Shown here: piece after piece, positions 7,798 to 59,476 of the stretch | How the letters are laid out: each line of letters starts with the position of its first letter | Position numbering within the stretch: position 1 is the first letter of the stretch | Source: Octopus sinensis | Taxonomy: Eukaryota | Reading direction: 5' to 3' | Length of the DNA stretch: 64,000 nt | NCBI RefSeq assembly: GCF_006345805.1 | Contig: NC_042998.1 | Coordinates: 84,320,001-84,384,000, forward strand | Program-made: the position numbers and the translations under genes | Notes under the pieces: model-generated | What the model saw: only the letters and a program-made list of their open reading frames with translations | Database searches by the model: none | Told to the model about the DNA's origin: nothing

Positions 7798-8582
7798 TAC
7801 AAACAGTGTTGTTTATTTGCAATCTTCAATGAAAACCTTCCTGGCTAATGCGCTGTTCATGTTTGAAGGACTGAGAAATATTACCTTGACTGGAAACTGG
7901 TGAGAGTTATTAACAGGAGAGCACTTGACCATAGACAATCTGCCTTGACAAATTTCATCTGACCATCTATGCAAGCATGAAAAAAAAATACATGAAAACA
8001 ATGATGATGACAATGGTTATGATGATTATTGGAAGGAGGTTGAGGACCATGGGAATTGAGGATTGTTTGAGGAAACTTTTCTAGGCTAGTAGCTTGGTTG
8101 CATTTACAGAAAGAGTTCTAAATCTGGGGAAATGGTCTGTAGTCCAAGTATTAACATTACAAAGGTCAACATGCTAATTTAGATCAGAAGACCTAGTATC
8201 ATTGAGGAAGTGGTTTTGTTCAGTATGTAGGAAGGAAGGTGGAACTTAACTCTATCTATTCACAAATAAACTATGAATAAACAAATGAGATTTCTGGCAA
8301 ACTGACAGAAAAGTAAGAGTTTAGATATATCAGAGGAGTAGCTAGCATTATAATCACTGTTGAAATGAAATCTCAGACAGCTGTCTCATTAGATGTAGCT
8401 GTTAAGTTTTTTATTGATGTTGACAGTAAAAGCTTTCCCTGTGGGGGAAAAGTTGTTCTGTATGAAGCATAAGTAAAACTTGTGATATGGAGCCATGGAC
8501 TTTAAATAAAGAAAATCTATGAAGGATGGAGAGAAATGAGTCAAGCATGATTCAGTGGATACTAACTTGTATGAGAAGCTGA

Positions 8583-12467: not shown

Positions 12468-12586
12468 GATTCCAATATTGTGCAATTCTTAGCGAAGGGA
12501 TTCTTGTCGTCTGATCGCAATGAAGTACATGCAGCTATAAACTTACTTTCTATTGGATCCAAGCTGGAATCGTTCCCTCATGTCGC
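12468..12586 (+). CDS. CIP2A: CIP2A exon (DSNIVQFLAKGFLSSDRNEVHAAINLLSIGSKLESFPHV)
   Basis: ttttcag acceptor, GTATGT donor. 119 nt, phase 0 to 2. Matches human [28 protein letters not shown]...FPAL. Confidence 0.9.
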
Positions 12587-20900: not shown

Positions 20901-21480
20901 TGCTCAAGAACACAATGTGTCACCTGGCCCAGGAATCAAAACTACAATCTTATGATTATGAGTCTAACACCGTAACCATTAACCCATGCACCTCCACAAT
21001 ATATGTATATATCTCCCTTACAGGGCTGATCGAATTGGCTGCCGATTTCTTCGCGGGGTTCTCTTCCCCTTCTCTCCCCCTCTTTTTACATTGTCTGTCT
21101 GGACTCCTCTCTTCCTACTTCTCTCCATGGCTATGCATACTTAAGCTAGTAACCTGCCTCATTCTTGATTCCGAATTCCTTTTGCCAAGTCTGTCCGTAA
21201 ACGAAGTGATCCCAAGATAAGAAATCTTTGAACTTTAATTCACCCCGTATCTCTATTTATTATTATTTATTATGTATCATTATTCTGAGCCCCCTAGTCG
21301 CCACTCTGTTTACTATTTCAGCCTCGCCTCGTTTTTGCATATTCTGTATAATTCATTAGTTATCGTTATAGATATTTAAGATCTATCTCCCTTACAGGGC
21401 TGATCGAATTGGCCTACCCGCCCCCACCACCAATACCGGATATCTCTATTTTGCTCCAACTATACCGGATGTCGTTTCTC

Positions 21481-22270
21481 CCACCACCATTATAGGTGTC
21501 TACTCTTTGAACCCCCCTCTTCAATACGCTATTTCACCATGCATTACCCCTCTCTCGATATCCTACGTTCTACTTGCCTAGAACCTGTCCTCTGAACCAC
21601 CTCCCACTGGTGCTCCCCTATATTTCTGCACCCCCCCCACCACCATTATAGGTGTCTACTCTTTGAACCCCCCTCTTCAATACGCTATTTCACCATGCAT
21701 TACCCCTCTTTCGATATCCTACGTTCTACTTGCCTAGAACCTGTCCTCTGAACCACCCCTCCCACTGGTGCTCCTCTATATTTCTGCCCCCCCCACCACC
21801 ATTATAGGTGTCTACTCTTTGAACCCCCCTCTTCAATACGCTATTTCACCATGCATTACCCCTCTTTCGATATCCTACGTTCTACTTGCCTAGAACCTGT
21901 CCTCTGAACCACCCCTCCCACTGGTGCTCCTCTATATTTCTGCCCCCCCCACCACCATTATAGGTGTCTACTCTTTGAACCCCCCTCTTCAATACGCTAT
22001 TTCACCATGCATTACCCCTCTCTCGATATCCTACGTTCTACTTGCCTAGAACCTGTCCTCAGAACCACCCCTCCCACTGGTGCTCCCCTATATTTCTGCA
22101 CCCCCCCCACCACCATTATAGGTGTCTACTCTTTGAACCCCCCTCTTCAATACGCTATTTCACCATGCATTACCCCTCTCTCGATTTCCTACGTTCTACT
22201 TGCCTAGAACCTGTCCTCTGAACCACCCCTCCCACTGGTGCTCCCCTATATTTCTGCACCCCCCCCCCAT
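21481..22270. repeat. Tandem array of five ~156-bp near-identical C-rich units
   Basis: attataggtg at 21489, 21645, 21801, 21957 and 22115. Confidence 0.95.
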
Positions 22271-22592
22271 AAAAAGCACCATCCGAACGTGGCCGATGCC
22301 AGACCCCTCTGGCACCTGTGCAGGTGGCACGTAAAAAACACCCACTACATTCGCGGAGTGGTTGGCGTTAGGAAGGGCATCCAGCTGTAGAAACACTGCC
22401 AGACTAGACTGGAGCCTGGGGCAGTCCCGAGCTCCCCAGACCCCGGTCGAAACCGTCCAACCCGTGCTAGCGCGGAAAACGGACGTTAAACGATGATGAT
22501 GATGATATATATATATACTCAAGAATTTTAATGGAGATAAGGCTCCAGTATATAGTACAACTGTTTTTTCGCTCATATATGAGCTAAAGGTT

Positions 22593-23368: not shown

Positions 23369-24685
23369 CTTGCAAAAACCTGTTGAGGCAAATGAAATCA
23401 AAATCACTGACGTGGCCGATGATAGTACCACCTGATTGGCACTTGTGGTATTGGAATGTTAAAGCACCATCCAAGTGTGATCATTGCCAGGGCCACCAAC
23501 AGGCTCCCATGCCGGTGGCACGTGAAAAACAACATTCGAGCATGGTCATTGCCAGTGCCACCTGACTGGCCCTCGTGGAAGGGCATCCAGCTGTAGAAAC
23601 TTTGCCAGTCTAACTGTCCAGCCCATGCCAGCATGGGAAGTGGACGTTAAACGACGACAATGATGATATATACACCCATTTGTAGAAATGTTCTTAGAAT
23701 ATTTTTGTGTCACTCTGTCTCTTTCCTTTACTTTGCTTCTTAATTTCCTTTCTTTCTCTGTTACCCTCCTCCCACTATCATATGACCTGTAACAACCTAA
23801 GGTGTTGACACTCTTTTTCACATTTCCTTCAACTGCACTGGTCACGATTTTCTGAGCTCCTTGCTCTTCTCCTCCCATGTCTATAGTCCTTTATGACAGT
23901 TTTCATTTCTCCTTCACATTATCCACTTTTGTCTTGTCCTACAGCCCAAAGGCTTTTTTTTTTCGTACATGTATTACCATTATTAATTGTTGACTTCATG
24001 TGGTCCTAAGCCTTTATTCTGTTGATTGTTTTGTCCCTCGTCCATCCACCAATGGTCTCATTCTCAGCAAGTTTCTTGTCGGTGCCTCCAGAGTGGAAGC
24101 TATATTATTGATAAAGGCTGAAATTGCATTTGACCCTCTGGCCGATAACTAGTGAACAGTTGGTGACCTGTGTTTTCTGTTCACCTGTCATCATTATCAT
24201 CATCGTTTAACATCTGTTTTCCATGCTGGCATGGGTTGGATGGTTTGACTTAGGTTTGGAGAGCCAGCGGCTGCACCAGGCTCCAATCTGATCTGACAAT
24301 GTTTCTACAGCTGGATGCCCTTCCTAACACCAACCACTCCAAGCATGTAGTGGGTGCTTTTTACGTGCCACCGGCACAGGAGCCGGTTAGGTAGGCCTGG
24401 CATCAATCACATTCGGATAGTGCTTTTTACATGCCACTGGCACAGGGTCAGTCAGGGGGTACTGTATTGGCCACATTTGGGTGATGCTTTTTATGTACCA
24501 CCAGCATGGGAGCGAGTTAGGTAGACCTGGCATTGACCATGTTCAGATGGTCCTTTTTACGTGCCATTGCCACGGGAGCCAGTCAGGGGGCACTGGTCAC
24601 AGCTACGATATTGGTTTTACTTGACTCATATATATGTATGTATATGTAGGTGATGATGATGATGATGATGATATATATATATATA

Positions 24686-26220
24686 TCATCATCATCATCA
24701 TCATCATCATCATTTAACGTCTGCTTTCCATGCTAGCATGGGTTGGACGGTTCAACTGGGGTCTGGGGAGCCCGAAAGCTGCACCAGTCCAGTCAGATCT
24801 GGCAGTGTTTCTACAGCTGGATGCCCTTCCTAACGCCAACCACTCCGAGAGTGTAGTGGGTGATTTTATGTGCCACCGACACAGGTGCCAGACGAGGCTG
24901 GCAAACGGCCACGCTCGGATGGTGTTTTTATGTGCCACCGACACAGGTGCCAGACGAGGCTGGCAGACGGCCACGTTCGGATGGTGTTTTTATGTGCCAC
25001 CGACACAGGTGCCAGATGAGGCTGGCGAACGGCCACGATCGGATGGTGTTTGTTACGTGCCCACAACAAGGAGGCCAGTTGATGCAGTACTGGCTACGGC
25101 TACGTTCAGATGGTTTTCTTGTGTGCCACCGGCACCACAGAGATACAAATTCCATTGATGTTCATCTATTTTGATTTGTTTTGATTTTCAGTTGCCTCAA
25201 CAGGTCTTCACAAGTGTCACAAGAAGGAAGGTATGCACAGGTGGACTGACTACGTCCCAGGTAGGGATCACAGGTTATGGCCTGACTAGTCTTGCCGGGT
25301 TTCGGATGGTGTTTTTATGTGCCACCGACACAGGTGCCAGATGAGGCTGGCGAACGGCCACGATCGGATGGTGTTTGTTACGTGCCCACAGCACGGAGGC
25401 CAGTCGGTGCGGTACTGGCTACGGCCACGTTCGGATGGTTTTCTTGTGTGCCACCGGCACTGGTACCACAAAGATACAATTCCATTAATGTTCATCTATT
25501 TTGATTTGTTTTGATTTGATTTGATTTGTTTTGATTTCATTTTGATTTTCACTTGCCTCAACAGGCCTTCACAAGTATCACAAGGAGGAAGGTATGCACA
25601 GGTTGACTGACTACGTCCCAGGTAGGGGCCATGGGATATGGCCTGACTAGTCTTGCCGGGTCTTCGGATGGTGTTTTTATGTGCCACCGACACAGGTGCT
25701 AGATGAGGCTGGCGAACGGCCACGATCGGATGGTGTTTGTTATGTGCCCACAGCACGATGGCCAGTCGATGCGGTACTGACTACGGCCACGTTCGGATGG
25801 ATTTCTTGTGTGCCACAGGCACTGGTACCACAAAGATACAAATTCCATTGATGTTCATCTATTTTGATTTGATTTGATTTGATTTTCACTTGCCTCAACA
25901 GGTTTTCACAAGTGTCACAAGAAGGAATGTATGCACAGGTGGACTGACTAGTCTTGCCGGGTCTTCGGAAGGTGTTTTTATGTGCCATCGACACAGGTGC
26001 CAGATGAGGCTGGCGAACGGCCATGATCGGATGGTGTTTGTTACGTGCCCACAGCACGGAGGCCGGTCGATGCGGAACTGGCTACGGCCACGTTCGGATG
26101 GTTTTCTTGTGTGCCACCGGCACTGGTACCACAGAGTGTGTGCCACCGGCACTGGTACCACAAAGTGTGTGTCACCGGCACTGGTACCACAAAGATACAG
26201 ATTCCATTGATGTTCATCTA
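24686..26220 (-). mobile_element. Multimeric RTE-3'UTR retro-element: about 4 units of 300-370 bp plus (TGA)n tail
   Basis: ctagtcttgccggg junctions at about 25286, 25647 and 25948; CAT tail at 24686-24712. Reverse complement of about 39420-40836. Confidence 0.9.
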
Positions 26221-29085
26221 TATATATATATATATATGAAATATACATTCAGTACAGGACATCACTGACAAATGAAAAACACATAAACACATAAGAGTTA
26301 AGTACAGGACAAAATACCAAAAGAAGTCTATCTCCTTCTCAGTTGTTGACTGTTTTACTACTCTCTATTTCGTGCTTTTAGTGAGAAGATAGGAAAACTT
26401 TATAAGACAGCAGCATCCAGAAATTTTTAAAATATAAAATTTGTGGAGAGTTAGGGCTTCAAACAAACAAACAACAACAGAATGGATGTACAAAATAAAC
26501 AGTTGACAAGGACAAACATTAATAGCTGTTAGGCCAAGACGAATTATAATGGGTAATGCCTGGGAGAAATTTTTAAAGGAAATAGAATAAATAGAAGAGA
26601 AAATATGTCGGGAGGCAAGAGAAATTACATGCAGTCCAGTGGGCGTCTTGTCCAAAAAAGACAGAGAAATGGCCTGTAGTCACATGTGAGCAACAGGCAG
26701 AGGGGAAGGGGGTCAAGAGAGAGGATGAAGGAAAGAAACAAAAGGAGTGAGGAGAAGGAATGAAAGCTAGTAGAGAGTGGGAGAAAGAGGACAGCAAAGA
26801 AGGAGGGGGAGAAGCGGAAAATATAGAGGATTATAGAGGGATAGAGAGAAAGAAAGAGAACAGTGGAGTCGCAGAAATTATATAAATGTAGGAACTACAT
26901 TTATGTACACACGCACACACACTTGATTGTGCATACCCTTGTCTAGGTATCATGTAATGGTTGTAAATCAGTTTCATTGTCATACAGGTGAGGTTATAAA
27001 CAAAATTGAATACACATACACAATGTGTGTGTGTTATTTGTTCATGAGCCAGCTGCATTTTAGGCATAAGAGAATTACACCTGATGCCTCTTATACCTAA
27101 ACTAACAACACACACCATGTGTAGGTGTGTTTGATTTTATTTATATAGCTCAAGCTGCTTCTAATTCACAAGTGAGGTTGTTCATTTCCAGTCTACTGTG
27201 TAAAACATGTCAGACCATGGGGAATATTGTTTTGCTTGGAAATGGGTGATGGTTGGCAACAGCAAGGGCATCTGGCTAAAGAAGATGTGCTTCAACAAAT
27301 TTTATCCGACACATGCAAGCATGGTAAAGTAGACGTTAGATGATGATTTTATATATCCCATTGTTGTCGTCATTGTCATCATCATCATCATCATTTAACA
27401 TCTGCTTTCCTTGGTGGCATGGGTAGGATGGTTTAACTGAGGACTTGCAAGCCAGTAGGCTGGACCTAGCTTCAATTTGATCTGGCAAGGTTTCTATAGC
27501 TGGATGCTCTTCCTAACGCCAACCACTTCGAGAGTGTAGGGGGTGCTTTTTACGTGCCACTGGCACAGGAGCCAGTCAGTGGGCACTGGCATCAACCTCA
27601 TATCTATATACAGACACACACACACACATATTTATGCACACGCATGCACACATGCAATTCTTGCATAAGGATATGTGTATGTGTGTGAATTACATTATCT
27701 TCAAATAAAGAAAAAGCAATATGCTCTGGAAAAATTCTCACCAATGAACAAAATAATCTTTGGTGAAAGATGTTGCTAAAATTAATTTCAATCAAGAGTC
27801 TCCTGCAATACTCAAGACAACATGAAAGGAAGTCTCCTACTTATAAAATGAATACAAAATAGAATTCATTATCTTATTCATTTATCATCCACTTTCTCAT
27901 GCTTGCATTGGTCAAATAGAATTTGTGGAGGAAGATTTTTCTATGGCTGGCTGCCCTTCCTGTCACAAACCTTCGTCTGTTTCCAAGCAAGGTAATATTT
28001 CCTTATGACCAGACATGTTTTATCACAGAAGACTGGAAACAAATAACCTTGCTTGTATGATGATGACACATTTACAATCATCACATGATGTGTAGCCACA
28101 AATACACATATCTACATACATACATACACACAACAATCTTCTTTCAGTTTTCCCCCTACCAAATACACTCACAAAGCTTTGGTTGGAGCTACATTAATAA
28201 ATGCTTGTCCAAGGTGCTGTACAGTAGATTTTAACCCAGGAAGATTCAGAAACAATGTTCTCAACTCCACAGCCACACCTGTGCCTATTGACTTTTTCTT
28301 AATTCCATGATATTGCACTATGTAAGCAGTAAGAAAGAATGTTCAGACATTGGGTCCCACTGAGGAGATGGCAAGGGACTGAGACCTTTGGCGATTTGCT
28401 ATGCTTGAGAAGAAATGTCAAGCTAAGTAAAACCATGGCCATCTATACATACTGGCATGTGCTGCTGTCTCTGTCTTGAAGGCTTGCAGGTGCTGGTGCC
28501 ATGTAAAGTGCAGCCATTTCAGTGTCACATAAAAAGCACCTGTGCCAGTATCACCTAAAAAAACATTCAGTACACTCTGTAAAGTGGTTGGCGTTAGGAA
28601 GGGCATCCAGCCATAGAGGCCATGCCAAAGCAGATGATTGGAGTCTGGGCAACTCTTCAGCTAGCCCGTTCCTGTCAAACTGTCTGACCCACACCAGCAT
28701 GGAAAACAGACGTTAAATGATGATGAGATAAGAAACCATCCCTGCTCTCTCCACTCCTTTATCTACCGGTTTGGCCTCACTTAAATAATGTCATCATGTT
28801 TTACCGCTTTCAGCATTCCTCAGTAATTACTTGTATTAACTGTTCTGCCAAAGCAGCTTTAAAACAGAAAGCTGCACTGATGCTGCATGCCGAGACATCT
28901 AAGCCTCTGCGTTGGCACACGTCTGGGTGACTTAGACACCACCTACTTTTGGCTTGCCATCAAGGTGTTCATCTGTTGCCGCCTTTGGTAGGCTGCAATT
29001 TTATTAGCATGCTTACACATACACATATGTATACACACAAACACAAACACACATATATATTCATTTGTATAGGCACACACACACA

Positions 29086-29088
<3 letters not shown>

Positions 29089-29152
<64 letters not shown>
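29089..29152. repeat. (TA)n microsatellite within a CA/TA-rich tract
   Basis: Direct reading. Confidence 0.95.
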
Positions 29153-29161
<9 letters not shown>

Positions 29162-30199
29162 TATACATATATATGTATACACTTACATATTAACATTTAT
29201 ACACACATATACACATACACACACTCACACACATATACCTGTGCATATACATATGTGTGTGTGTGTGTGTATATCACATCTTACTTAAGGCTGCAACAGT
29301 TGTATATTAATATCACATACACACAGACTTTGTTGATATACAGAACGTTAGTGAGCAGGCTGCAGCTTAAACTTACATCACATTATAAAACAAACATCTT
29401 TCAGATTTATGATAGCACAAACAAACATTCTGAGTACTTAGAAAAAAAAAAATCGATGTTTTATTTTTGTTTAATTTTTTTTTCTCCTTTTTATTTAGCT
29501 AAAAATGTAAAAAAAAATCATGAAGTGTAGATCTTCTAATAACATGATTAAAAAGAAGAGTGGGCAGTTAGGAAATAAATGGCAGGTTTTTGTAATATAT
29601 ACTTTTTTTTTCCTTCTGTGTCTATCGAACCAATCTGTCTCATATTTTATCGTGTTTGAAAACGAGTTAAATTATTATGAGTCATCATTGAGTTGTGATA
29701 GTAGGTATATAGCTAACCAACTATAGAGGTCACCAATAAAGGTGTGCTATGTGTGTGTGTTTGTGTGTGTTACCATATGTTCAGCATTTTGAAAATGTGT
29801 GTTTTCTAAATCTTTTGGATATTTTGTCAATAAATTAGTAAGTAGATTTAGTGTACCAAAAAAACTATGACAGGTAGCTAGTTTGTTTTTTAAGAAGAAT
29901 ATGGACTGCACATAAATAATGTTTTGTTTCAGCTGTTTTTCAAACTGGAAAAGTTGTGATATATATATTATCATCATCATGATCATCATCATTTAATGTT
30001 TGTTTTCCATGCTGGACAATTTTGACAGGAGCTGGCAAACTGGAGGGCTGCAGCAAGCTCCAATCTTCTGCTTTGGCATGGTTTCTTCCCCAACACCAAC
30101 CACTTTACAAAGTGTAGTGGATGCCTTTTGCCTGACACCAGCGCAGGTACTTTCCACATGGTACTGGCATGGGTGCTTTTCATGTGGTACCAGCATCTA

Positions 30200-31850
30200 C
30201 CAAAGGGGAGTCGATTAAATTTATAACCACCCTTTATTGATATTTATTGTCAATAATTTCGAACATTCCTCAATAACTTTTACCTCCAAATATGCTTCAG
30301 ATAGGTCCAACTTTGAAAAAATTTTCCTCCAATTTCATAAAAATTTTCTCCAGAGTTGGTAATGGGTAATTATATGGCATCAAACATTCATTTAATCCCT
30401 TTGAAAAATAAGCGCACACTCGGATTTTATTTATTTTTTTCTTAACATAAATTGTTGGGGATGCCCAATTTGTGTAATCAGTTTTTTCAATAATGCCAAG
30501 CTTTTCAAGTCTATCCAATTCTTTGTTGACTTCTTTCAACACTGCGAAAAGTACTGTTTGTTTTTGTTTAAAAACCGGTATAGCGTTTTCTTTCACTTGA
30601 AACTTCACCTCTGTTTTGGTGCAAAGACCCAATTCATCAGAAAAAACTTCGGGAAAAATATTTCATAATTCATTTTTTTTTAATCCTCTGACACCTTATT
30701 TGTACAGGTGTAAGAACCATTCACATTTTTACAAAAAGTATTTATGGGGAGGTCCCATAAGTTAACTCATTCCATCCAGTCTCTTCCAAATAAATTTGTA
30801 TTTTTCTACACTAAAACTTTGGCTTTCAAGGTTTTTCCACAAACTGTAGCATCACTTATAATTTTGCCCATAAAATGCAATTTTTTTCCCGAAACACCTC
30901 ACGCAATTTTCAAAGTTTCCTTTAATCTAGGTTTCTCTACTTTTCTCCATGTATCTTTATCTTTATCTAGTTTCAGCTCACGAGCTGTGGCCGTGCTGGG
31001 GCACTGCAATTGTATCTGTATTATTTGTCATGATATCACTGCCTGTATCCAATTGTAACTTGATATTCACATTATTCATTTTTATGGATACAAATTTTCA
31101 TTTCTGAGTCTCATTTAGAAATTTTGTTAACAATACATTCTTTCTAGAATTTTTTTTTTGTTTGACCCTGTTTTGTTTCACTGTACAATGTGAGCTTTTA
31201 TGTCCAATATTTCCATACTCAAAACATTCACGATTTTTAAAAGGACAATTACTTCTAATATGTAAACCTCTGCATACATAGCATGGATTTGGTCTTGATG
31301 TTCGTTTTTCCTTATCCGTTTCACACATGTATCTGAAAACAATTGTTTTCTTTAATTTTATCCACATTATGTCTTAAATTTATAATCCTCTGGCATTCTT
31401 CAGCTACTGCCTGTAGAGTTAATTTTTGGTCCTATTCTAATTTTGCTAATATATGGGAATATATATCAGCATCTTTTCTTGCAGTTAACCCTTGAACAAA
31501 AATTAGACAATTGAACAAATCCAGGGTTAATTTATTTAATTTGAATCTTTTACACTCTGTTAATGACCCCAGCATAGGTGATGCAATCTTCATCATCTTT
31601 TTTAACTAACTTTAAACACTGCCAACGGGTATTGAAAGGGGAACTTCTTTCACTGAAAATTCTTGATAACAAATTAATTGTTTCATCGAAACAAATCTCA
31701 CCTGATTTCTTTAACAGAATATAATTACAGTATTTTTCTTGTTTAGCAGGGGATAATTTTCTTAAAATTCTTCTCATCATTCCAATTTTTACATTCTTCT
31801 TTGAAGATTTCTTTGTATCTTCTAAAATATGCAGAAAAAGTAGTACCTTT
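30200..31850 (-). mobile_element. Ty3/gypsy LTR-retrotransposon relic (gag, double CCHC knuckle, protease, N-terminal RT)
   Basis: Gag TFSAYFRRY...RILRKLS; knuckles CYVCRGLHIRSNC and CFEYGNIGHKSSHC; protease LQLDTGSD (DTG at 31049-31041); RT ELDRLEKLGIIEK...WASP...YPLP...DLSEAY...NRLPFG. Many stops. Confidence 0.9.
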
Positions 31851-32635
31851 GGATCTTTACCTTTTGACCGACAGATTTAAAAATTAATTTTTTATAACTA
31901 AACACTTTCAAACTTCGTATACTGGTAGAATGTGTCACATAAAACATCTTTTTCTCTTAGCGTTGTTGAGACAATTCTGTATTTTGGAAGTTATTTCTTG
32001 TTAAAGTTGTATTTTGGTAATTTCAACCAATCAATGATGTGTATTCAGCTGAATAAAATTGCTGCTGTTGTTTGTCAACAACAACTTCCGGCGGTGTATA
32101 TTTCATTTGTCACTGTTATTTGTGACATATTTCGTCTCAGTTACGTTCGTATGAATAAATGAGTGTATCTGAAGCATGTTTACTTCATGGCACCACCATA
32201 ATTATTCATGCTTCATTTTTCATTTTTTTCTGTAACTCTAACCCTAAAACCCTAATGCTTAAAACCCTAACCCTAAACCCTAGCCCTAACCCTAAAACCC
32301 TAACCCCAACCCTAAAACCCTAACGCTAAAACCAGTACAAAAGTACAAATGATGTCATAAATAACATTGACAAACGAAAAATTCACCGCCGATAGTTGTT
32401 GTTGACAAACAACAGCAGTAGTTTTATTCAGCTAAATAAACGTCATTGACTGGTTGAAATTACCAAAATACTACAACTTTAACATGAAATAACTTCCTAA
32501 ATATAAGCTTTTCTCAAAAACGTTAAGAGTAAAAGATGTTTTATATGACACATTCTGCCAGTGTCCGAAGTTTGAAAGTGTTTAGTTGCAAAAATTATTT
32601 TTTAAATCTGTTGGACAAAAGGTAAAGATCCGTAC
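31851..32635. mobile_element. Foldback/MITE-like element with about 285-bp imperfect TIRs and an internal telomere-like (CCCTAA)n tract
   Basis: 31851-32135 is the imperfect reverse complement of about 32346-32631; degenerate CCCTAA/CCCTAAAA repeats at 32233-32332. Confidence 0.85.
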
Positions 32636-33040
32636 CGTCTGATGAGAATGAACCTGAAGTATTTTCAGACTTCTTCAACACTACTTCCAGTAACTGTTGG
32701 TATTGTTGTTGTATCCTAGACAAACACTGGATATATAATTTAATGAATAGAGGTAAAATCAATGTGTTCACACAATGTACTTCAAAAAACGCCCTCTCAA
32801 CAACTCCTACTGACCTCTTGTCTCAACCAATACGCTACTCTTTATAAGGGTTCAACTAGTTCATTTTTCCAATTCCCCAGGGGTGTCAATGACTGTCGCC
32901 ACAACATTGTACTAATATTTTCAACCCTGAAAGGATGAAAAGTAAAGTTGACTTTGGCAGTATTTGAACTTAGAATGTAAACAGGCAAAAGAAATGCTGC
33001 CCCAGCACACTAATAATAATAATAATATAATAATAATAAT

Positions 33041-33672
33041 AGCAATATTTACACTGGACAATGTGTCGGCATTATAAAATCAAAACCGCTTACAAATGCT
33101 ATAAACACCATCCTAAAGCTATGACTGAGAGAGAAAATGTGTCGATTCTCTGGGACTTCCTCGTACATACTGACAAAACTATGTAAGCTAATAAACTGGA
33201 TATTATTATAAAAGATCAGACAAAAGAGGTGTGTTTATTAATTGACATGAGTATCCCTTGCGATCACAATATAGTGGCGAAAGAATTTGACAAGATCAGT
33301 AAATATAAAGGCTTGCTAATAGAAATTGAAAAAATGTGGCATCTCAAGGCGACTATAGTACCAGTAATTGTAGGATCTCTAGGAATGATAAAAAAAGGTA
33401 CTGAAACCTATTTGAGAATGATACCAGGCTTACCATCCCTACAGGAAGTGCAAAAAATCGTGTTAACTGGAATGACTCATGTACTGAGAAGAGCATTATC
33501 GCTGTGAAAACAACATCCTTTCATGAATTTATTTATTTATTAATTTTTTAAATACATATTTTACCTGTGAATTTGGGTGTGTAATCTGGGAATGCATACA
33601 ATGAGCTTCTCTGTCCTAGGTGTATGGAAAACACTCGGCGAGAAACACAAGAAAATTTGAAGAAAGAAGGAA
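33041..33672 (+). mobile_element. 3' fragment of a restriction-like-endonuclease LINE (R4/Dong-like) within (TAA)n
   Basis: ILWDFLVHTDKTM*ANKLDII.KD....CLLIDMSIPCDHN...KISKY...W...IVPVIVGSLG motif; (TAA)n tracts at 33011-33040 and 33673-33706. Confidence 0.82.
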
Positions 33673-33725
33673 AATAATAATAATAATAGTAATAGTAATA
33701 ATAATACTCTAAATCATCATTTTAG

Positions 33726-33936
33726 GTTGGGTGATGCCTTGGCTGCTAACAACGTTGTCCGTGAACAAGATCATAAAACAATGAACAATTCTTCATTTGG
33801 ATGGAATAGCAATGTCCACAACTCTTACAATATTTTACCATCAAATCATGGTGGTCAGAAAGTTCCTGGAAAATCAGCATCAATTGCTGAGCAGAACATT
33901 GAAGATTTGATTGAAAAACTTCAAACTGGTTTAGAG
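33726..33936 (+). CDS. CIP2A: CIP2A exon (LGDALAANNVVREQ...NIEDLIEKLQTGLE)
   Basis: ttttag acceptor, GTTGGT donor. 211 nt, phase 2 to 0. Matches human LGESIAANNAYRQQ and NIEELIEKLQSG. Confidence 0.93.
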
Positions 33937-34309
33937 GTTGGTATATATTCCTTTCTGGTATTTACTTTCTCCAAGAAGGTCCTTAGAAAAAATGCTCAGT
34001 AATACTGTTTGTTATATTATGTCATCTACCATACACTGTTAACATTTATCCCCTTCTATTACTATCCATCACTCACACATACACTCTCTCTCTCTCTCTC
34101 TCTCTCCCTTTGCCACCCTTTCATCCCAAACATTCTGTATTAACCAAGATAGGCTAATGTCTCTTTACCTGTCATCGTTGTCTCTTCTATTCATCTCCTC
34201 AACCACAAAGCCAAAAGTTTGAATTGTCATTCCACAGATTTTTTTTTTGTTCCTACAATTTGAAATACTTTTGTATCTTTATTTATTTATCTATTTATTC
34301 CTTTTCCAG

Positions 34310-34372
34310 GTAAAAGATGTGAAGCTTTCTGAAATGATAGATGTTTATGAGCACAAGCTGCAGTCAATGCAG
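34310..34372 (+). CDS. CIP2A: CIP2A exon (VKDVKLSEMIDVYEHKLQSMQ)
   Basis: cttttccag / GTAAGA. 63 nt, phase 0 to 0. Matches human DVRISDIMDVYEMKLSTL. Confidence 0.93.
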
Positions 34373-35612
34373 GTAAGATTGGTTACCTTGAATTTGTATT
34401 GAGAAAGCCCTCTTTTTACTAAATTATTTAAACAGAATAGGAAAAAGCACTGATGCTGGTACCCCATGAAAAGCACTGGTGCTGGTACTGCATAAAAAAC
34501 ATCTGTACTAATGCAATTTAAGAAGCACCTGTACTGGTAACATGTAAAAGCACTCACTACATTCTGTAAAGTGGTTAACCCATAAAGTGCTGGGATATGC
34601 ACTTACATAGCATGGACTGCTGAGCACATTTTATGAAAATGAGACGATCATGCACATAAAAACAAAAAATATCTTCTTAGTATGTAATGGTGAAAAGTCA
34701 TTAGTTCAACTATTAGTCCTCTTGCATTCTGGTGGGTATTAGAGCGTTTGAGTGACATTAGACCTCAACAAACGCCCATAAATTAAATGCATCTATCTGG
34801 GCCATGATCGTGGCCTGTCAGCCTGTGCCTGACAGCCATGATCATGGCCTGTTGCGCTTTATGTATTAATGTTGTGAAGGACATCCAGCTGAAGAAGCCA
34901 ACCAAAACAGACTGGAGCCTGGTGCCACTTATCAGCTCCTGTCAAACCATCCAACTCCTACCAGCATGGAAAATAGACATTAAATGATGATGATGATGAT
35001 GAATTATGAGATTGTTGTTTGGGTACAGGAAGGCACCTAGTCTGTGTGGTTAGAAAATTTACTTCACAACCATGTGATTCCAAGTTCAATGTCACTATAA
35101 AGCTTTACACTATGTAATTGCAATGCTTTTATGTGTTCTGCTTAAATCTTCTTCAGGTCATCTTTGCCTTCTGTCTTTCCAGGGTCAATAAAATAAAGTA
35201 ACAGTCAAGTACTGGAGTTGATTTAATCATCTAATACTGTCTTCCCTAAATATCAGGTTTTGTGTGTAAGAAACAATTATTATTATGACTGTTGTCAAGA
35301 TGGTGAGCTGGTAGAATCGTTATCATGCTAGACAAAATGTTTAGTGGCATTTAATTAGATTTAATTCTGCCACAGTTAACTTTATCTTTCTCCTTTTGGA
35401 ATTGATAAAATAAGTACTAGTTGAACACAAGGATCAATGTAATCGACTAGCCCCCTCCCTCAAAATTTCAGGCTTTTTGCCTATAATAGAAAGGATTGGT
35501 ATGACTGTTTTTATTAAATTTCTTTAATAAAAAAAATAAGCACCAGAAAGAAGGCATCTTTAATAAGCAGTGAAAATAATGTAAATATTGAATACTTTGA
35601 TTCTTTCCTTAG

Positions 35613-35723
35613 ATGAGAGAACAGCAGCTACAAGACCTTTTGGAAGCTAAGACATTAGCAGTGGTCCGTGCTGATCGTGTCATAAGTCAATTCAGGTCTC
35701 GTCGTGCAGAAGCAGAAGCAGAG
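35613..35723 (+). CDS. CIP2A: CIP2A exon (MREQQLQDLLEAKTLAVVRADRVISQFRSRRAEAEAE)
   Basis: ttccttag / GTAAGT. 111 nt. Matches human [35 protein letters not shown]. Confidence 0.95.
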
Positions 35724-36234
35724 GTAAGTTTCTACTGGTGAAGTCTTCATAGAATTTTCATTGAAGTGGTTTAGTTTATGGTTGTAAGAAGGCCACTTCA
35801 AATATGTTTCATCTGTTATGGTTTCAAACTTCCATCCATCAAGGTGTTGTCATATCAGATGTAAACACGGGACTAATTATAAACTGTGATGGATTATCAG
35901 AATCTGTCAAACAGCAGATGGCAACATGCCTAGAAGTGTTTAGTTATATCACTTTGTCCTGAGTTCAAATCCCACTAAGGCCGGTTTTTGCCTTTCGTTT
36001 TTCTGGGGTCAGTAAAATAAGTATTTTAATCAAGATTTGTATTTTTTTACGTCAATTATTCTTCTGTGTGTTCAATAAAAATACAAATGTAAGTTAAGAA
36101 TAGGAGTTGATTAAACCTTTTTGATAACATCTGGTGACAAACACAACACTCGAATTTTACTTAGCATTTACACTTGAAGTCTCATTGGTTTTATTAAATT
36201 AATTCTCTTTATTCTTTTGAAATTTTATCTTCAG

Positions 36235-36356
36235 AACTGTAGCATACGTAATATGCTCCGAACTTTTGAAAAAAGAACAGAAGAATATCAAGAAAAGCTA
36301 CAAAATATGACTGCTCTTGAGACAAACTATAACAATTTACTGGCTGAAAAACAGAA
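36235..36356 (+). CDS. CIP2A: CIP2A coiled-coil exon (NCSIRNMLRTFEKRTEEYQEKLQ...AEKQ)
   Basis: tcttcag / GTGAGA. 122 nt, phase 0 to 2. Heptad-rich; corresponds to human LASMLREVERKNEEL. Confidence 0.88.
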
Positions 36357-37142
36357 GTGAGATGTTCTTTCTTTTTCTGGTTCTACCTTTTGGAAACTCC
36401 ATATTTGTTTCACCTTGTTTTTTTAAAAGTAAAATATATAACATTTACTTTCGTCTTCGTGTGTGTATTTCGTTTTACTTTTCTTTGCAAATGGAATGGT
36501 TAGCAGCTCTTCTAGAGTTACAACACAAGACTTCTCTGCTGACAAACCTCTTTCAAACCCTATTACTCTTCTTTGACACTTCTGATGTAATGCAGTCACA
36601 ATCCACTTGGCATTTAGCTGTCTTCAGTGGAATTTTCTCTGCAAGTAATTGGTTTACGCCTCCAGCAGGGGTTGTCATGACCTTTCAATGCACCACCTTT
36701 CTCTAATCTTTTCTGAAAAGCCGAAAACCAGAAGTAAATCTAGATGGTTCTTTTTTTTCTCCTCTTTTCCAATATCTGCAGTCTTTGTTCCAGCTCATCT
36801 TCTCTTACTACAAGTTTAGGAGGGCTTGCAAAGGTCATGGGCACAACTTTGTGGTTTGTCATAAGTGACTGTTAGAATAAATCCCAAACTTAAAAAACAA
36901 GTATTAATACTTGGGTCAATTTGTTTGACTAAACCCTACAAGCTGGTGCCACAACATGGCCACTGTTCAATGACTGAAACAATTAAAACTAAAATGCGTT
37001 TTGTTATTGCAGCTTCATTGCACCACAAACGTATTTTGTTATACTAAATTTTAACTTGTCTTCTAAATAAAATATGATTCCTACCTTACAGTATATAAAT
37101 AATATTAAAGAAAATTGTCCTTCTTTATCGTTTCAATTTCAG

Positions 37143-37205
37143 ACTGGAATTAATGGCAGAGGAACATGTGGTATTGAAAGAAAACTATAATGAACAAAGT
37201 CAAAA
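37143..37205 (+). CDS. CIP2A: CIP2A coiled-coil exon (LELMAEEHVVLKENYNEQSQ)
   Basis: tttcag / GTAAGA. 63 nt, phase 2 to 2. Matches human KLESVAEEHEILTKSY. Confidence 0.9.
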
Positions 37206-37537
37206 GTAAGATCAATCTTCTTTTCTGTTTCTGATCTACTTGCTGTTGTATCATATTAGTTTCAGATCAAGTTTAGCTAATTTTTATTTATAAGTATGTT
37301 GTTGTTCTTGTAAAGGCCAACATTAATAATCAGTGAGCATCGAATTAGCAAATGCACAGGAATAGGGTAAGTGAAATGAGAGAGAGAGAGAAAGAGAGCA
37401 GAGAGGATATCCTTTTCACCTGAGATAACCATGTCTCCCTGACAAATATATTATAAAGATGATCAGTTCAGATTTTTCTAGAAACTTAAGTTGACCCTAC
37501 CAAATGGAATAACTATGTACAGCTATTGATACTATCT

Positions 37538-37541
<4 letters not shown>

Positions 37542-37634
<93 letters not shown>
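37542..37634. repeat. (CT)n microsatellite
   Basis: Direct reading. Confidence 0.95.
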
Positions 37635-38471
37635 CAAACTGTGTGTGTATTTATTTAATTGTATTGCTTAGCTAAGTTTTAGTGCTTGATTTACTTATAA
37701 TGTATGGTATTCATAAGCAGCTGAGGTAGTGAGAATTCACATTTTTAAACCATATCATAAGTATAGAGCATAGTATTAACCCTTAAGAGATGATAGGGCC
37801 AATCTATCAGCCAAAAAGTCAAATGATGAAGATTGTATTGGTTCAATCAGTTTCCTACATGAATATATATAGTTTTATACATGTAAAGTAATTACTTTAT
37901 TTTTTATAATTTTTTTTTTTTGAAAAATAAGTGCATGCCCTCTGTAGGGCTTGTGAAAAGGGCTCCATCTTCTTGGCACTGAAACTCCAAATGAGGCTCT
38001 GTCTCCAAAGTGTTAATTAATAAATGACAAAAAAGTAGGTGTTACATAATTAAATCCATTAGCTTACAGCTGTTTTTGCTGTAAGAAATACTGTGCCCTA
38101 TAGTGAATATTAGCATGACTTCTCACAGTTTCATCAGAGCCTTTAATGATTGGACAATGTATATGAAAAAATACATCATTCAATCATTATGGGCTTTGAT
38201 GAAGATGAGATAGTGGTGGTGTTGGAAAATGTGATCCTGAGTCTTTGATAGAGATGGGATGGTCACAACCAGAATGTCATGGATTGTTGATCTGGATCAT
38301 GGATGACCTGTGTTTAAACAACATCAATAAATTAACTTAAAGTGTCTTTGTATATAATTGGGATAAAATTAATAATAATGGTTTCAAACTTTGGCAGAAT
38401 TCAGAGGGAGTGGTTTTGTCAATTACATTGGTCCCTTCTGATCAAATGGTACTCATTTTATCAAACCCAGG

Positions 38472-40806
38472 CACTTTGTGGTACCAGTGCCTGTGGCACA
38501 CAAGAAAACCATCCGAACGTGGCCGTAGCCAGTACCGCATCGACTGGCCTCCGTGCTGTGGGAACATGGTGGCACATAAAAACACCATCCGAAGACCCGG
38601 CAAGACTAGTCAGGTCATAACCCGTGGCCCCTACCTGGGACGTAGTCAGTCCACCTGTACATACCTTCCTTCTTGTGACACTTGTGAAGACCTGTTGAGG
38701 CAAGTGAAAATCAAAACAAATCAAAATAGATGAACATCAATGGAATTTGTATCTTTGTGGTACCAGCGCCGGTGGCACACAAGAATCCATCCGAACGTGG
38801 TCGTAGTCAGTACCGCATCACTGGCCATCGTGCTGTGGGCACATAACAAACACCATCCGATCATGGCCGTTCGCCAGCCTCATCTAGCACCTGTGTCGGT
38901 GGCACATAAAAAACACCATCCGAAGACCCGGCAAGACTAGTTAGGCCATAACCCATGGCCCCTACCTGGGACGTAGTCAGTCCACCTGTGCATACCTTCC
39001 TCCTTGTGATACTTGTGAAGGCTTGTTGAGGCAAGTGAAAATCAAAATCAAATCAAAACAAATCAAAATAGATGAACATCAATGGAATTTGTATCTTTGT
39101 GGTACCAGTGCCGGTGGCACACAAGAGAAAACCATCCGAAAGTGGCCGTAGCCAGTACCGCATCGACTGGCCTCCGTGCTGTGGGCACATGACAAACACC
39201 ATCCGATCGTGGCCGTTCGCCAGCCTCATCTAGCACCTGTGTCGGTGGCACATAAAAACACCATCCGAAGACCCGGCAAGACTAGTCAGGCCATAACCCA
39301 TGGCCCCTACCTGGGACGTAGTCAGTCCACCTGTGCATACCTTCCTTCTTGTGACACTTGTGAAGACCTGTTGAGGCAAGTGAAAATCAAATCAAAACAA
39401 ATCAAAATAGATGAACATCAATGGAATCTGTATCTTTGTGGTACCAGTGCCGGTGGCACACACTTTGTGGTACCAGTGCCGGTGGCACACAAGAAAACCA
39501 TCCGAACGTGGCCGTAGCCAGTTCCGCATCGACCGGCCTCCGTGCTGTGGGCACGTAACAAACACCATCCGATCATGGCCGTTCGCCAGCCTCATCTGGC
39601 ACCTGTGTCGGTGGCACATAAAAACACCTTCCGAAGACCGGCAAGACTAGTCAGTCCACCTGTGCATACCTTCCTTCTTGTGACACTTGTGAAGACCTGT
39701 TGAGGCAAGTGAAAATCAAAATCAAATCAAAATAGATGAACATCAATGGAATTTGTATCTTTGTGGTACCAGTGCCTGTGGCACACAAGAAATCCATCCG
39801 AATGTGGCCGTAGTCAGTACCGCATCGACTGGCCATCATGCTGTGGGCACATAACAAACACCATCCGATCGTGGCTGTTCGCCAGCCTCATCTAGCACCT
39901 GTGTCGGTGGCACATAAAAACACCATCCGAAGACCCGGCAAGACTAGTCAGGCCATATCCCATGGCCCCTACCTGGGACGTAGTCAGTCCACCTGTGCAT
40001 ACCTTCCTCCTTGTGACACTTGTGAAGGCCTGTTGAGGCAAGTGAAAATCAAAATGAAATCAAAACAAATCAAATCAAATTAAATCAAAATAGATGAACA
40101 TTAATGGAATTGTATCTTTGTGGTACCAGTGCCGGTGGCACACAAGAAAACCATCCGAACGTGGCCGTAGCCAGTACCGCACCGACTGGCCTCCGTGCTG
40201 TGGGCACGTAACAAACACCATCCGATCGTGGCCGTTCGCCAGCCTCATCTGGCACCTGTGTCGGTGGCACATAAAAACACCATCCGAAGACCCGGCAAGA
40301 CTAGTCAGGCCATAACCTGTGGCCCCTACCTGGGACGTAGTCAGTCCACCTGTGCATACCTTCCTTCTTGTGACACTTGTGAAGACCTGTTGAGGCAAGT
40401 GAAAATCAAAATAGATGAACATCAATGGAATTTGTATCTTTGTGGTGACACGTGGCACACAAGAAAACCATCCGAACGTGGCCGTAGCCAGTACCGCATC
40501 GACTGGCCTCCGTGCTGTGGGCACGTAACAAACACCATCCGATCGTGGCCGTTTGCCAGCCTCGTCTGGCACCTGTGTCGGTGGCACATAAAAAACACCA
40601 TCCGAGCATGGCCGTTTGCCAGCCTCGTCTGGCACCTGTGTCGGTGGCACATAAAATCACCCACTACACTCTCGGAGTGGTTGGCGTTAGGAAGGGCATC
40701 CAGCTGTAGAAACACTGCCAGATCTGACTGGACTGGTGCAGCTTTCGGGCTCCCCAGACCCCAGTTGAACCGTCCAACCCATGCTAGCATGGAAAGCGGA
40801 CGTTAA

Positions 40807-40836
<30 letters not shown>
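38472..40836 (+). mobile_element. Multimeric RTE-3'UTR retro-element: about 7 units of 300-370 bp plus (TGA)n tail
   Basis: gaagacc(c)ggcaagactag at 38591, 38922, 39267, 39633, 39929 and 40286; TGA tail 40806-40836. It interrupts an older SINE (…atcaaaccc | gaaaggatgaaaggc…). Confidence 0.92.
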
Positions 40837-40838
<2 letters not shown>

Positions 40839-41292
40839 AGGATGAAAGGCAAAGTCAACCTTTGAACCCAGCACATAAAGACAGACAAAATACTGCTAAG
40901 CATTTTGTCTGGCATGCTAATGATTCTTTCAGCTTGCTGCCTAACAACAGCAACAACAATAATAAAATTGTAGTTATAATTTCCCTAACTAGGGAATATA
41001 TAATTATGGATCGTTATTTGGTATTGTTTCTTCATCAGTTGTCTAGTAACTTGTGTAGTGCATCCGAAGATTCTTTCTCACCACTTCGTCACATGTCTTC
41101 CTGGGTTTACCCCTTCCACTGGTTCCCTCCACAATTAGAGCTCAGCAATTCTTCGTGCAGCTGTCCTCATCTATATGCATCACTCCTAAAAAGAATTGGA
41201 TTTATTAAAATTGATAAATCTAATTATAGAGAGGAACTAATGAAGTTTCATGAGATATTAGATATTTTAGAATAACTCTGCAGTTGCTTTAA

Positions 41293-41724
41293 CCCTTTTT
41301 TTTGTTGAAATATCCTGCCTTTATTTAATTAATTTAGAAAATAATGATAAATTAACTACAATAACTTTGTCGTTATTTAACCCTTTTGTTACCAACCCGG
41401 TTGAAACCAGCTCTGGCTCTGAGTACAAATGTCTTGTTTTCAAGAGTTCTGAATTAAAATCTTCCACCAAACGTTAGTCACAATTTATGTTCCTAACACT
41501 AGCTGAATGATAACTAAGTTATTTTACTAAATTCTTTGTTATATTTAAAGTAATTGAAAGAAACACAGCATCTCAAAATAAATACAGTAACGAAAGGGTT
41601 AACAGGTGCTTGAACATAAATTTACATGAGATTTTGAAGAAAGGTTTTAATTTATACCATTTTAAAACAAGGAATTTGTGTCACAGAGCCAAGTGTAGTT
41701 TCTGGTAGGTTAGCACCAAAAGGG
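41293..41724. mobile_element. Nested TTAA MITEs (inner 41381-41598 within outer 41293-41724)
   Basis: Both elements bounded by TTAA|CCCTTT...AAAGGG|TTAA. Confidence 0.8.
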
Positions 41725-41936
41725 TTAAACTGTATTTTAGCTTTTTCTATGGATGAGGCATTTAATAGATGCATTTATTTATTAACTTTGAAGGAAGGTT
41801 TTAATTTGAACCACTTTAAGCAGGGTTGATGTCAGGTGACTTGGTATCAAAAGGGTAAAAACTGTATGCTGTTTTTTGTTTTATTTTGTTTTTTTTTTAT
41901 CTGCCTTATCATTTGTTATCTGTTTCTTTGCAATAG

Positions 41937-42050
41937 GTTAGAGAATGCTGAACATATGCTCAATACTTTGAGACAGGAACATACTTCATTGACAGAGATG
42001 CATGAAATTTTACGTAAACATCATGAAACACTGAAGCAACAGAATGAAGT
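41937..42050 (+). CDS. CIP2A: CIP2A coiled-coil exon (LENAEHMLNTLRQEHTSLTEMHEILRKHHETLKQQNE)
   Basis: Long pyrimidine tract then TAG, GTAAGT donor. 114 nt, phase 2 to 2. Corresponds to human LNESLKEQNE. Confidence 0.88.
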
Positions 42051-57145: not shown

Positions 57146-59476
57146 TTGCCACTATGAAAGGTTGCTGAATGAGGAAAATGAATGGGATAAAGAGAGTCTG
57201 CCGAATGTCGACCCAACAGAGGGACCAGCAATCTGAGTTGACAGTTCCTTAGTAGTAAGGCAATTACAAGCATGAAAACAGGGTGGGCCCCTGGCCCATC
57301 AGGAATTACTGCAGAAATGCTCAAAATATCTGGTAGTGTTGGCTATAGCCTAGTCACCCGTATAGTTAACCAGGTGATACACGAAGGAGTCATACCCAAT
57401 GACTGGTGTAGCAGCATAATAGTCAACTGCTACAAAGGTAAAGGTGACGCTCTAGATACAAATAACTACAGGGGTATCAAGCTGCTGGATCAGGTAATGA
57501 AGGTCATGGAGAGGGTTATAGCCCAACTAATTAGAGAGAGAGTTAGCTTAGATGAGATGCAGTTTGAGTTCGTGCCAGGGAAAAGTACTACTGATGCTAT
57601 ATTCTTGGTAAGACAGCTGCAGGAGAAATACCTAGCCAAAGATAAGCCCCTGTACCTGGCTTTTGTTGATATGGAGAAAGCCTTCGACAGGGTCCCCCGA
57701 TCCCTTATCTGGTGGTCAATGAGGAAACTAGGGATAGATGAATGGTTAGTGAGAGCTGTGCTAGCCATGTAAGGTGAGGGTTGGCAACGAGTACAGTGAA
57801 GAATTCCGGGTAGAGGTTGGGGGTCCACCAAGATTCAGTCCTCAGTCCCCTCCTATTTATCATAGTCCTCCAGGCAATAACGGAGGAATTCAAGACAGGA
57901 TGCCCCTGGGATCTCCTCTATGCTGATGACCTTGCTCTAATTGCTGAGTCACTATCAGAACTGGAAGAGAAGTTTCAGGTGTGGAAGCAAGGTTTAGAAT
58001 TGAAGGGCCTTAGAATCAACCTAGCCAAAACCAAAGTCCTAATAAGTAGGAAGGTAGACCAATCACAAACGCCTTCAGGTAGATGGCCCTGCTCGATCTG
58101 TAAAAAAGGCGTAGGTAGAAACTCTATAAAGTCCACCAAGTGTAAGCTATGGACACATAAGAGGTGTAGCAATGTCAAAAGAAGGCTAACTAGAAAAATA
58201 GTTTTTATCTGTGGCAGATGCTCAGGAGCAATAAACATTGAAAATGTGCAGAGACCAACTTCTACCATGTTCCAGGGAGAAAAACTAGAAGTAGTTGATA
58301 ACTTCTGCTACCTGGGTGACCGGGGGTGGGTGTGCTGAAAGTGTAACTGCTAGAGTAAGAATAGCCTGGGAAAAGTTTAGAGAGCTCTTACCCCTGCTGG
58401 TGACAAAAGGCCTCTCGCTCAGAGTAAAAGGCAGACTGTATGATGCATGTGTACGTACAGCCATGCTACATGGTAGTGAAACATGGGCTGTGACTGCTGA
58501 GGATATGCGTAAGCTCGCAAGAAATGAAGCCAGTATGCTCCGATGGATGTGTAATGTCAGTGTCCATAATCGACAGAGTGTAAGTACCTTGAGAGAAAAG
58601 TTGAACCTAAGAAGCATCAGTTGTGGTGTGCAAGAGAGATGTTTGCGCTGGTATGGTCATGTGACGAGAATGGCTGAAGATAGTTGTGTGCAAAAGTGCC
58701 ACACCCTAGCAGTTGAGGGAACCTGTGGAAGAGGTAGACCCAGGAAAACCTGGGACGAGGTGGTGAAGCATGACCTTCGAACTTTAGGTCTCACCAAAGA
58801 AATGACTAGAGACTGAGACCTATGGAAGTATGCTGTATGTGAGAAGACCCGGCAAGACTAGTGAGAACATAACCTGTGGCCTACATACCTTTCCTTCTTG
58901 GGACACAAAACTCCACTTGTGAAGACCCGTTGAGGCAAGTGAAAATCAAAATCAAAACAAATCAAATCTGATATCAGAAAGCAGAACCAAAATCGAAGTC
59001 GATCAACATCAATGGAAATTGCAGCTGTGGTACCAGTGCCGGTGACAAGTAAGCGAACCATCCGATCGTGGCCGTTGCCAGCACCGCCCCAACTGGCCTC
59101 CGTGCCGGTGACACGTAAAAGCACCATGCGTTCGTGTCCGTTGCCAGCCTCGCCTGGCCCCCATGCCGGTGGCACGTAGCACCATCCGTTCGTGGCCATT
59201 GCCAGCCTCGCCTGGCCCCCGTGCCGGTGGCACATAAAAAGTACCATCCGTCCGTGGCTGTTTGCCAGCTCCATCTGGCACCTGTGCAGGTGGCACGTAA
59301 AAAGCACCCACTACACTCACAGAGTGGTTGGTATTAGGAAGGGCATCCAGCCGTAGAAACACTGCCAGATCAGACTGGGCCTGATGCAGCCTTCTGGCTT
59401 CACAGACCCCAGTTGAACCGTCCAACCCATGCTAGCATGGAAAGCGGATGCTAAATGATGATAATGATGATGATGA
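57146..59476 (+). mobile_element. 5'-truncated, inactivated RTE-clade LINE (RT with YADD, PHD-like finger, 3' UTR, (TGA)n tail)
   Basis: ORF pieces 57272-57772, 57817-58338 and 58295-58816 carry NYRGIKLL, QFEFVPGKSTTDAIF, FVDMEKAFDRV and LLYADDL (YADD at 57919-57930). Broken by frameshifts and stops; tail of TGA repeats ends near 59476. Confidence 0.93.

Follow-up and report, generated by a model that had tools for sequence, protein, structure and literature searches.

A 64,000-nt stretch of Octopus sinensis chromosome CM016860.1 (GCA_006345805.1), starting at ~84,320,001 and hereafter called the window, covers the 3′ two-thirds of the gene for CIP2A; with that assembly it has 57,377 overlapping bases, at which there are 0 mismatches. 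Within it, coding exons 14 to 18 are bracketed by two near-identical copies of one repeat in opposite orientation, the left arm in intron 13 and the right arm in intron 18 (Table 1). The reading that fits the locus best, and that we hold to be very probable as a whole, is that the arms are two young, independent retroelement insertions carried as neutral passengers. The RNA duplex that they could form would serve mainly as a substrate for ADAR (adenosine deaminase acting on RNA), with altered splicing of the enclosed exons as a by-product at most.

The first-pass annotation, made from the letters of the window, had described a near-identical inverted repeat flanking the exons between 33726 and 37205, and full alignment bears this out. 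When the reverse complement of the left arm is aligned globally with positions 39409-40833 of the right arm, the 1422 columns hold 1398 matches, 24 mismatches (98.3% identity) and nine indels. Most of the indels are differences in the copy number of a sub-repeat (29, 62 and 10 nt), and the longest perfectly complementary runs extend over 207, 189, 145 and 113 nt. The repeat finder and BLAST are concordant. In BLAST the best high-scoring segment pair (HSP), of 1248 nt, joins 24921-26165 to 40661-39434 with 95.9% identity when gaps are counted and a score of 2001 bits; for the tail segments, 24685-24929 and 40591-40835, complementarity is 99%. The arm pair is a clear outlier in the window and not a product of chance, since the next strongest unrelated inverted pair scores only 411 bits at 82% identity. 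The spacer between the arms is 13.2 kb and includes exons 14-18. The left arm ends 7,507 nt before the acceptor of exon 14. Past the donor of exon 18, it is 1,265 nt to the start of the right arm and 2,204 nt to its collinear part; there is no agreed limit for how near to the splice sites such repeats must lie. The first-pass annotation had the right copy start at about 39420, but this copy is longer and begins at 38470, because it has ~2.5 more tandem units.

Both arms are built to the same plan. Units of 300-360 nt, partly composed of a ~62-nt sub-repeat, are repeated in tandem; after them come a core with the sequence ggaagggcatccagctgtagaaac and a (GAT)n tail (24687-24713 in the left arm, 40807-40836 in the right). 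Four to five units are present in the left arm and ~7 in the right, and the 5′ truncation points differ, falling at different places in the array. The same components are found in a degenerate long interspersed nuclear element (LINE) near the far end of the window, hereafter the partner LINE. Its ~650-nt 3′ untranslated region (UTR) carries the unit once, with four ~62-nt sub-repeats, the core and the (GAT)n tail, and left-arm positions 24692-25177 match 59476-58990 in this region at 82% over 493 nt. As unit, sub-repeats, core and tail all recur downstream of an open reading frame (ORF) with RVT_1 matches, the arms are 5′-truncated copies with an amplified 3′UTR unit, taken from the 3′ end of a LINE or from a non-autonomous element derived from one, and the partner LINE represents the autonomous family behind them. 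Precise empty sites (see below), a simple-repeat tail, variable 5′ truncation and a 3′ end common with an element encoding reverse transcriptase are all features of insertions of elements lacking long terminal repeats. ARAGORN detected no transfer RNA (tRNA)-like sequence in the window, so the arms show no sign of the head, with its pol III promoter, that marks a tRNA-derived SINE (short interspersed nuclear element); the arms are 5′-truncated, and the source element may have had such a head. Rfam at gathering thresholds likewise gave no match in the window. In Pfam, the ORF pieces of the partner LINE match RVT_1 and, below the cut-off, a PHD finger (57814-58335). Degenerate 3′ parts of partner LINEs, comprising the C-terminal ORF and the 3′UTR, occur three times in the window, all on the + strand (6862-7800, 57242-59466 and 60479-61923).

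Two kinds of known element offer points of comparison. LINEs of the RTE type reportedly occur with 5′-truncated copies or with derivatives that are SINEs. The family described here resembles them in its trinucleotide-repeat tail, its frequent 5′ truncation and a tail common to the autonomous element and its short copies; the sub-threshold PHD-finger match in the partner LINE, in contrast, is not a classical RTE feature. The 3′UTR of ~600 nt reported for the octopus element RTE-2_OV (PMC9115989) is similar in length to that of the partner LINE. The arms are also unlike the LINE copy in the window, having a tandemly amplified 3′UTR unit where the latter has a single one. Hominid SVA elements are composite non-autonomous retroelements with an internal variable number of tandem repeats. 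By analogy, the arms resemble them in a non-coding body made of a tandem array of variable copy number, in presumable mobilization in trans, in a 3′ tail and in variable 5′ truncation; in sequence, origin and partner LINE the two are unrelated.

The history of the arms can be read from the orthologous loci of Octopus vulgaris (L001) and Octopus bimaculoides (L002), which were reached through their annotated CIP2A proteins. At the right arm, window segments 37100-38469 and 40837-42100 abut at L001:37355 and at L002:40148, and in both species tatcaaaccca runs uninterrupted into aaggatgaaagg at the empty site. At the left arm, O. vulgaris has a single (AT)9 (L001 24353-24370) where segments 23604-24686 and 26220-28500 join, and this arm is absent from O. 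bimaculoides as well. The flanks are 97.5-99.1% identical between O. sinensis and O. vulgaris. A comparison with species lacking an insertion had been proposed as a check in the first-pass annotation, and it finds both arms absent from both species; the accompanying suggestion that the repeats are retroelement copies, each inserted separately, is borne out by these empty sites. The arms are, on this comparison, evidently two independent insertions made after O. sinensis had split from O. vulgaris, and not a duplication.

The 98.3% identity of the arms and the collinear higher-order structure of their arrays would also be expected had an inverted segmental duplication, or gene conversion, taken place inside the gene instead of two transpositions. 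The homology, however, ends exactly at the element boundaries, and the flanks run straight into orthologous O. vulgaris sequence; each arm has its own (GAT)n tail, and the 5′ ends differ in the way that variable 5′ truncation predicts. Inverted segmental duplication was rejected because homology stops at the element ends and the sites are empty in the sister species, and an origin by duplication or conversion is regarded as extremely improbable. Later gene conversion between the arms is possible but is not needed to account for the data. Repeats in tandem arrays are also difficult to assemble, and with one O. sinensis assembly (GCA_006345805.1) inspected it might be asked whether the assembler misplaced or duplicated one or both arrays. 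Such an artefact has very little probability, as the junctions are base-precise against two species and the flanks are complete, the (AT)n on either side of the left arm fits a target-site duplication, and the window contains no runs of N. Moreover, 24 substitutions, nine indels and distinct 5′ ends mean that neither arm is a copy-paste of the other.

Separate insertion of the two arms is accompanied by signs of recent origin. The substitution divergence between the arms is 1.7%, falling to 0.9% outside CpG contexts, and the observed/expected CpG ratio is 0.68-0.71 in the arms vs 0.35 in the window; low divergence and a high CpG ratio are as expected of very young copies. The LINE-tail family has also left a private insertion of ~1 kb in O. 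vulgaris (L001 46176-47203, CIP2A intron 19), for which the O. sinensis site (window 49651/49669) is empty, so that CIP2A holds three young insertions of this family across two sister species. Since each lineage has private insertions, the family has been active in both since they split. Recent activity of SINE and LINE families has been reported in O. vulgaris (PMC13282606) and in octopus generally (PMC9115989). In being lineage-specific, very young and absent from the sister species, the two arms resemble the young, species-specific transposon dimers of mammalian circular RNA (circRNA) hotspots (Gruhl et al. 2021, PMC8516420).

The host gene had been named CIP2A from the letters of the window, an identification that the protein matches bear out. 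A genome model of 22 coding exons corresponds exactly to XP_029658139.1 (“protein CIP2A-like [Octopus sinensis]”, 898 aa), itself a member of a 90% protein cluster. The exon translations align to human CIP2A (PDB 5UFL, residues 510-561) and to the end of Pfam CIP2A_N. This Pfam family is found in close homologues with E = 1e-51 to 1e-123, and is above the gathering score in the O. bimaculoides protein P0001, which is 97% identical to the window’s exons (176 bits, E = 1e-51). Among protein-cluster representatives, the exon translations retrieved an O. bimaculoides protein that is 97% identical (E = 6e-157), together with ~60 metazoan CIP2A homologues. The 5UFL alignment is continuous over the 12586/33726 junction, and the 21-kb intron 13 therefore hides no missing exon.

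Two further observations concern the gene model. Intron 10, the 3′ end of which lies at window positions 4375-4392, resembles a U12-type AT-AC intron: its donor, which lies outside the window on the upstream side (L003 18745), reads ATATCCTT, its acceptor is AC at 4390-4391, and a CCTTAAC motif resembling a branch site lies ~10 nt upstream of the acceptor. The exact RefSeq CIP2A protein is obtained only with this AT-AC junction. In the O. vulgaris annotation (locus L001) CIP2A is split into models of 162 aa for the N-terminus and 463 aa for the C-terminus (CAI9718165.1 and CAI9718163.1).

Exons 14-18, which the arms enclose, have AG/GT splice sites throughout and sum to 211+63+111+122+63 = 570 nt; the putative back-splice sites are canonical, with ag/G at 33726 and A/gtaaga at 37205. 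A back-splice junction 37205/33726 would read ...caaagtcaaaa joined to gttgggtgatgcc, in which AA+G gives Lys, and a skip junction 12586/41937 would read ...cctcatgtcgc joined to gttagagaatgct, in which GC+G gives Ala. The five exon coordinates, their phases and both junction codons had been predicted correctly, as judged by the 22-exon model. The splice-phase arithmetic is, though correct, unremarkable. The first-pass annotation spoke of an “endless ORF”, and the circular frame is indeed open; it is stop-free because the block is an in-frame piece of the native coding sequence with a length divisible by 3. Among the internal consecutive-exon blocks of CIP2A, however, 79 of 210 (38%) are phase-symmetric, and six of the 20 internal exons, taken singly, have a length that is a multiple of 3, so phase symmetry was rejected as a signal and the open frame loses any special meaning. 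The other product envisaged, an in-frame CIP2A isoform lacking the 190 residues of the block (the linker and the first half of the coiled coil), finds no counterpart: no protein without them was found, whether in database relatives (395-1256 aa) or in the 90% cluster, and all octopus proteins keep the block. A circularly permuted 190-aa query against a collection of 5.8 billion proteins returned one distant relative (36% identity), a result that is uninformative, the collection containing no octopus CIP2A transcript fragments.

Coordinates of the arms, their flanks, the related elements and the CIP2A exons considered here are collected in Table 1.

Table 1. Features of the O. sinensis CIP2A window, in window positions.
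Feature	Position	Strand	Description
CIP2A coding exon 13	12468..12586	+	Upstream partner of hypothetical skip junction
Older LINE-tail/SINE copy	22268..22517	+	Intron 13; strongest within-intron pairing competitor of left arm (86%, 257 nt)
Putative target-site duplication, left copy	24671..24686	.	(AT)8
Left arm	24687..26219	-	1533 nt; 5′-truncated copy of LINE 3′UTR tandem array; CIP2A intron 13; (GAT)n tail at low-coordinate end
Putative target-site duplication, right copy	26220..26237	.	(AT)9
CIP2A coding exon 14	33726..33936	+	211 nt; first base finishes split codon
CIP2A coding exon 15	34310..34372	+	63 nt
CIP2A coding exon 16	35613..35723	+	111 nt
CIP2A coding exon 17	36235..36356	+	122 nt
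CIP2A coding exon 18	37143..37205	+	63 nt; last two bases open split codon
Right arm	38470..40836	+	2367-nt copy of same element; CIP2A intron 18; (GAT)n tail 40807-40836
CIP2A coding exon 19	41937..42050	+	Downstream partner of hypothetical skip junction
Degenerate partner LINE	57242..59466	+	RVT_1 ORF pieces 57242-58335 (E = 3.5e-12, 6e-11); 3′UTR ~58817-59466

With two insertions in the flanking introns of a single transcription unit, what would be their consequence? Pairing between the arms dominates the locus, at 2001 bits vs 318 bits or less for pairs internal to intron 13; competitors for the left arm reach at most 263 bits, and intron 18 has no internal pair. All 72 cross-intron HSPs in O. 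sinensis come from the new arms, and the best cross-intron inverted pair in O. vulgaris is one of 120 nt at 79%. The proposed course of events begins with two recent and independent retrotranspositions in the O. sinensis lineage, which placed the element in intron 13 in antisense and in intron 18 in sense orientation, both insertions most likely being selectively neutral passengers. In any pre-mRNA that still held intron 13 when intron 18 was transcribed, the arms could then form a near-perfect double-stranded RNA (dsRNA) stem of ~1.4 kb and enclose exons 14-18 in a loop of 13.2 kb. In a coleoid, this intronic stem would most probably be hyper-edited by ADAR and unwound, the coding sequence remaining unaffected, with at most low-level back-splicing (37205 to 33726) and skipping of exons 14-18 as splicing by-products.

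What is known of octopus RNA agrees with this ranking of outcomes. Over 18 tissues of O. vulgaris, 296 high-confidence circRNAs were found, mostly in single tissues, and the authors ascribe this scarcity to the melting of intronic dsRNA by ADAR; it is in intronic and 3′UTR hairpins that editing in octopus is concentrated (PMC9699675). The prior for a circRNA is accordingly unfavourable, since circRNAs are few in O. vulgaris and their scarcity is attributed to ADAR. The first-pass annotation had offered both a circRNA and an ADAR substrate, and prior knowledge gives the ADAR half the better support. The circRNA supplement of the same study has no CIP2A entry, its species being O. vulgaris, which itself lacks the repeat. 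An editing footprint in the differences between the arms was sought and rejected, as there is no A/G excess (eight A/G vs 10 C/T differences).

Several observations weigh against the proposal of two neutral insertions whose transcripts meet mainly as an ADAR substrate. The right arm has a target-site duplication of 0-1 nt, i.e., no clear one, and the apparent duplication of ~16 nt at the left arm is ambiguous since its target is a microsatellite. No full-length source element with an amplified 3′UTR array was seen, and the insertion calls depend on a single O. sinensis assembly (GCA_006345805.1). As to the RNA, the acceptor of exon 14 is transcribed 5.7 kb ahead of the pairing part of the right arm, and because of this delay and the 7.5 kb that separate the left arm from that acceptor, intron 13 may often be removed first. 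Formation of dsRNA, editing, back-splicing and skipping are steps that we infer throughout.

It could be argued instead that the inverted repeat drives a functional product specific to O. sinensis, either a circRNA of 570 nt translated by a rolling-circle mechanism or a functional CIP2A isoform minus 190 residues. The repeat is strong, lies in both flanking introns and is dominant over its competitors, and the block has canonical splice sites, symmetric phases and several ATG codons. Reverse-complementary repeats in flanking introns are known to promote back-splicing in animals broadly (PMC8516420; Ivanov et al. 2015, as cited in PMC9699675). Against this stand the retention of the block in all octopus proteins in the databases, the phase symmetry of 38% of CIP2A blocks, and the distance of 7.5 kb between left arm and acceptor. 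Octopus circRNAs are, in addition, rare and antagonized by ADAR. The insertions postdate the species split, so that any product would be brand new and unconserved, and the segment removed by skipping would be the linker and first coiled-coil half of a conserved protein. A function of this kind therefore appears highly improbable, and the same is true more generally of any functional or translated product from the locus. Detection of back-splice or skip junctions in deep total RNA is a lesser claim, and is unlikely though by no means far-fetched. Young, species-specific transposon pairs in mammals have been linked to circRNAs that are read as splicing by-products, and in the model of Gruhl et al. 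(2021, PMC8516420) such pairs arise convergently. That model is mammalian, and at CIP2A its genomic half is the one in evidence.

The main effect of the arms might also be exerted on DNA. Non-allelic homologous recombination between two inverted sequences of 1.4 kb with 98% identity and perfect runs of up to 207 nt, set 13.2 kb apart, would invert the segment with exons 14-18 and yield a null CIP2A allele, whether somatically or in the population. The reference arrangement is nevertheless non-inverted, its ORF being intact and giving exactly the RefSeq protein, and recombination as the principal consequence is considered improbable.

Among known systems, the locus can be compared with the inverted Alu pairs (IRAlus) that flank circRNA-forming exons in primates. 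As in these, opposite copies of one retroelement family lie in the introns around a block of exons with canonical splice sites, and the cross-intron pair is stronger than pairs within introns. The CIP2A arms differ from IRAlus in being LINE-3′UTR arrays of 1.4-2.4 kb vs SINEs of ~300 nt, in the 7.5 kb between one arm and its splice site, and in a coleoid host with scarce circRNAs. Intronic inverted repeats hyper-edited by ADAR offer a second parallel, as here too a long, near-perfect duplex could form within one transcription unit, although the 13-kb loop at CIP2A is far larger than that of typical edited hairpins.

The window holds further repeats. A foldback-type element at 31851-32631 in intron 13, ~1.1 kb upstream of exon 14, has inverted arms of 282 nt with 87% identity, between which lies an interstitial run of telomere-like (AACCCT)n (32234-32333). 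The same intron contains five copies of a C-rich tandem repeat of 156 nt at 97% identity (21480-22266). An open frame of 106 codons at 33187-33504, ~220 nt upstream of the exon-14 acceptor, resembles a remnant of a transposon-derived protein. Direct repeats of 181 nt at 45980-46160 and 47112-47292 are 100% identical, lie 1132 nt apart and have no extended homology around them; they may mark the two ends of an element or duplication of very recent date.

The CIP2A locus is what transposon activity ordinarily produces in a genome rich in repeats, and it documents a very young and still-diversifying LINE-3′UTR tandem-array element. At the same time it has the genomic characteristics of an inverted-repeat-flanked exon block, namely flanking repeats, canonical sites and dominant cross-intron pairing. 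Were the insertions to have created a lineage-specific translated circle of exons 14-18, whose concatenated linker and coiled-coil repeats would disturb CIP2A dimerization, or a CIP2A isoform minus 190 residues, a retroelement pair would have given rise to a de novo gene product despite the suppression of such events that is attributed to ADAR in this animal; the probability of this is exceedingly small. Of wider use is the pairing of species. O. sinensis carries the repeat, and O. vulgaris has both sites empty within flanks of 97.5-99.1% identity and essentially no cross-intron complementarity, which makes a clean natural plus/minus contrast. It bears on whether a long intronic duplex in a coleoid yields back-splicing and skipping or is neutralized by ADAR.

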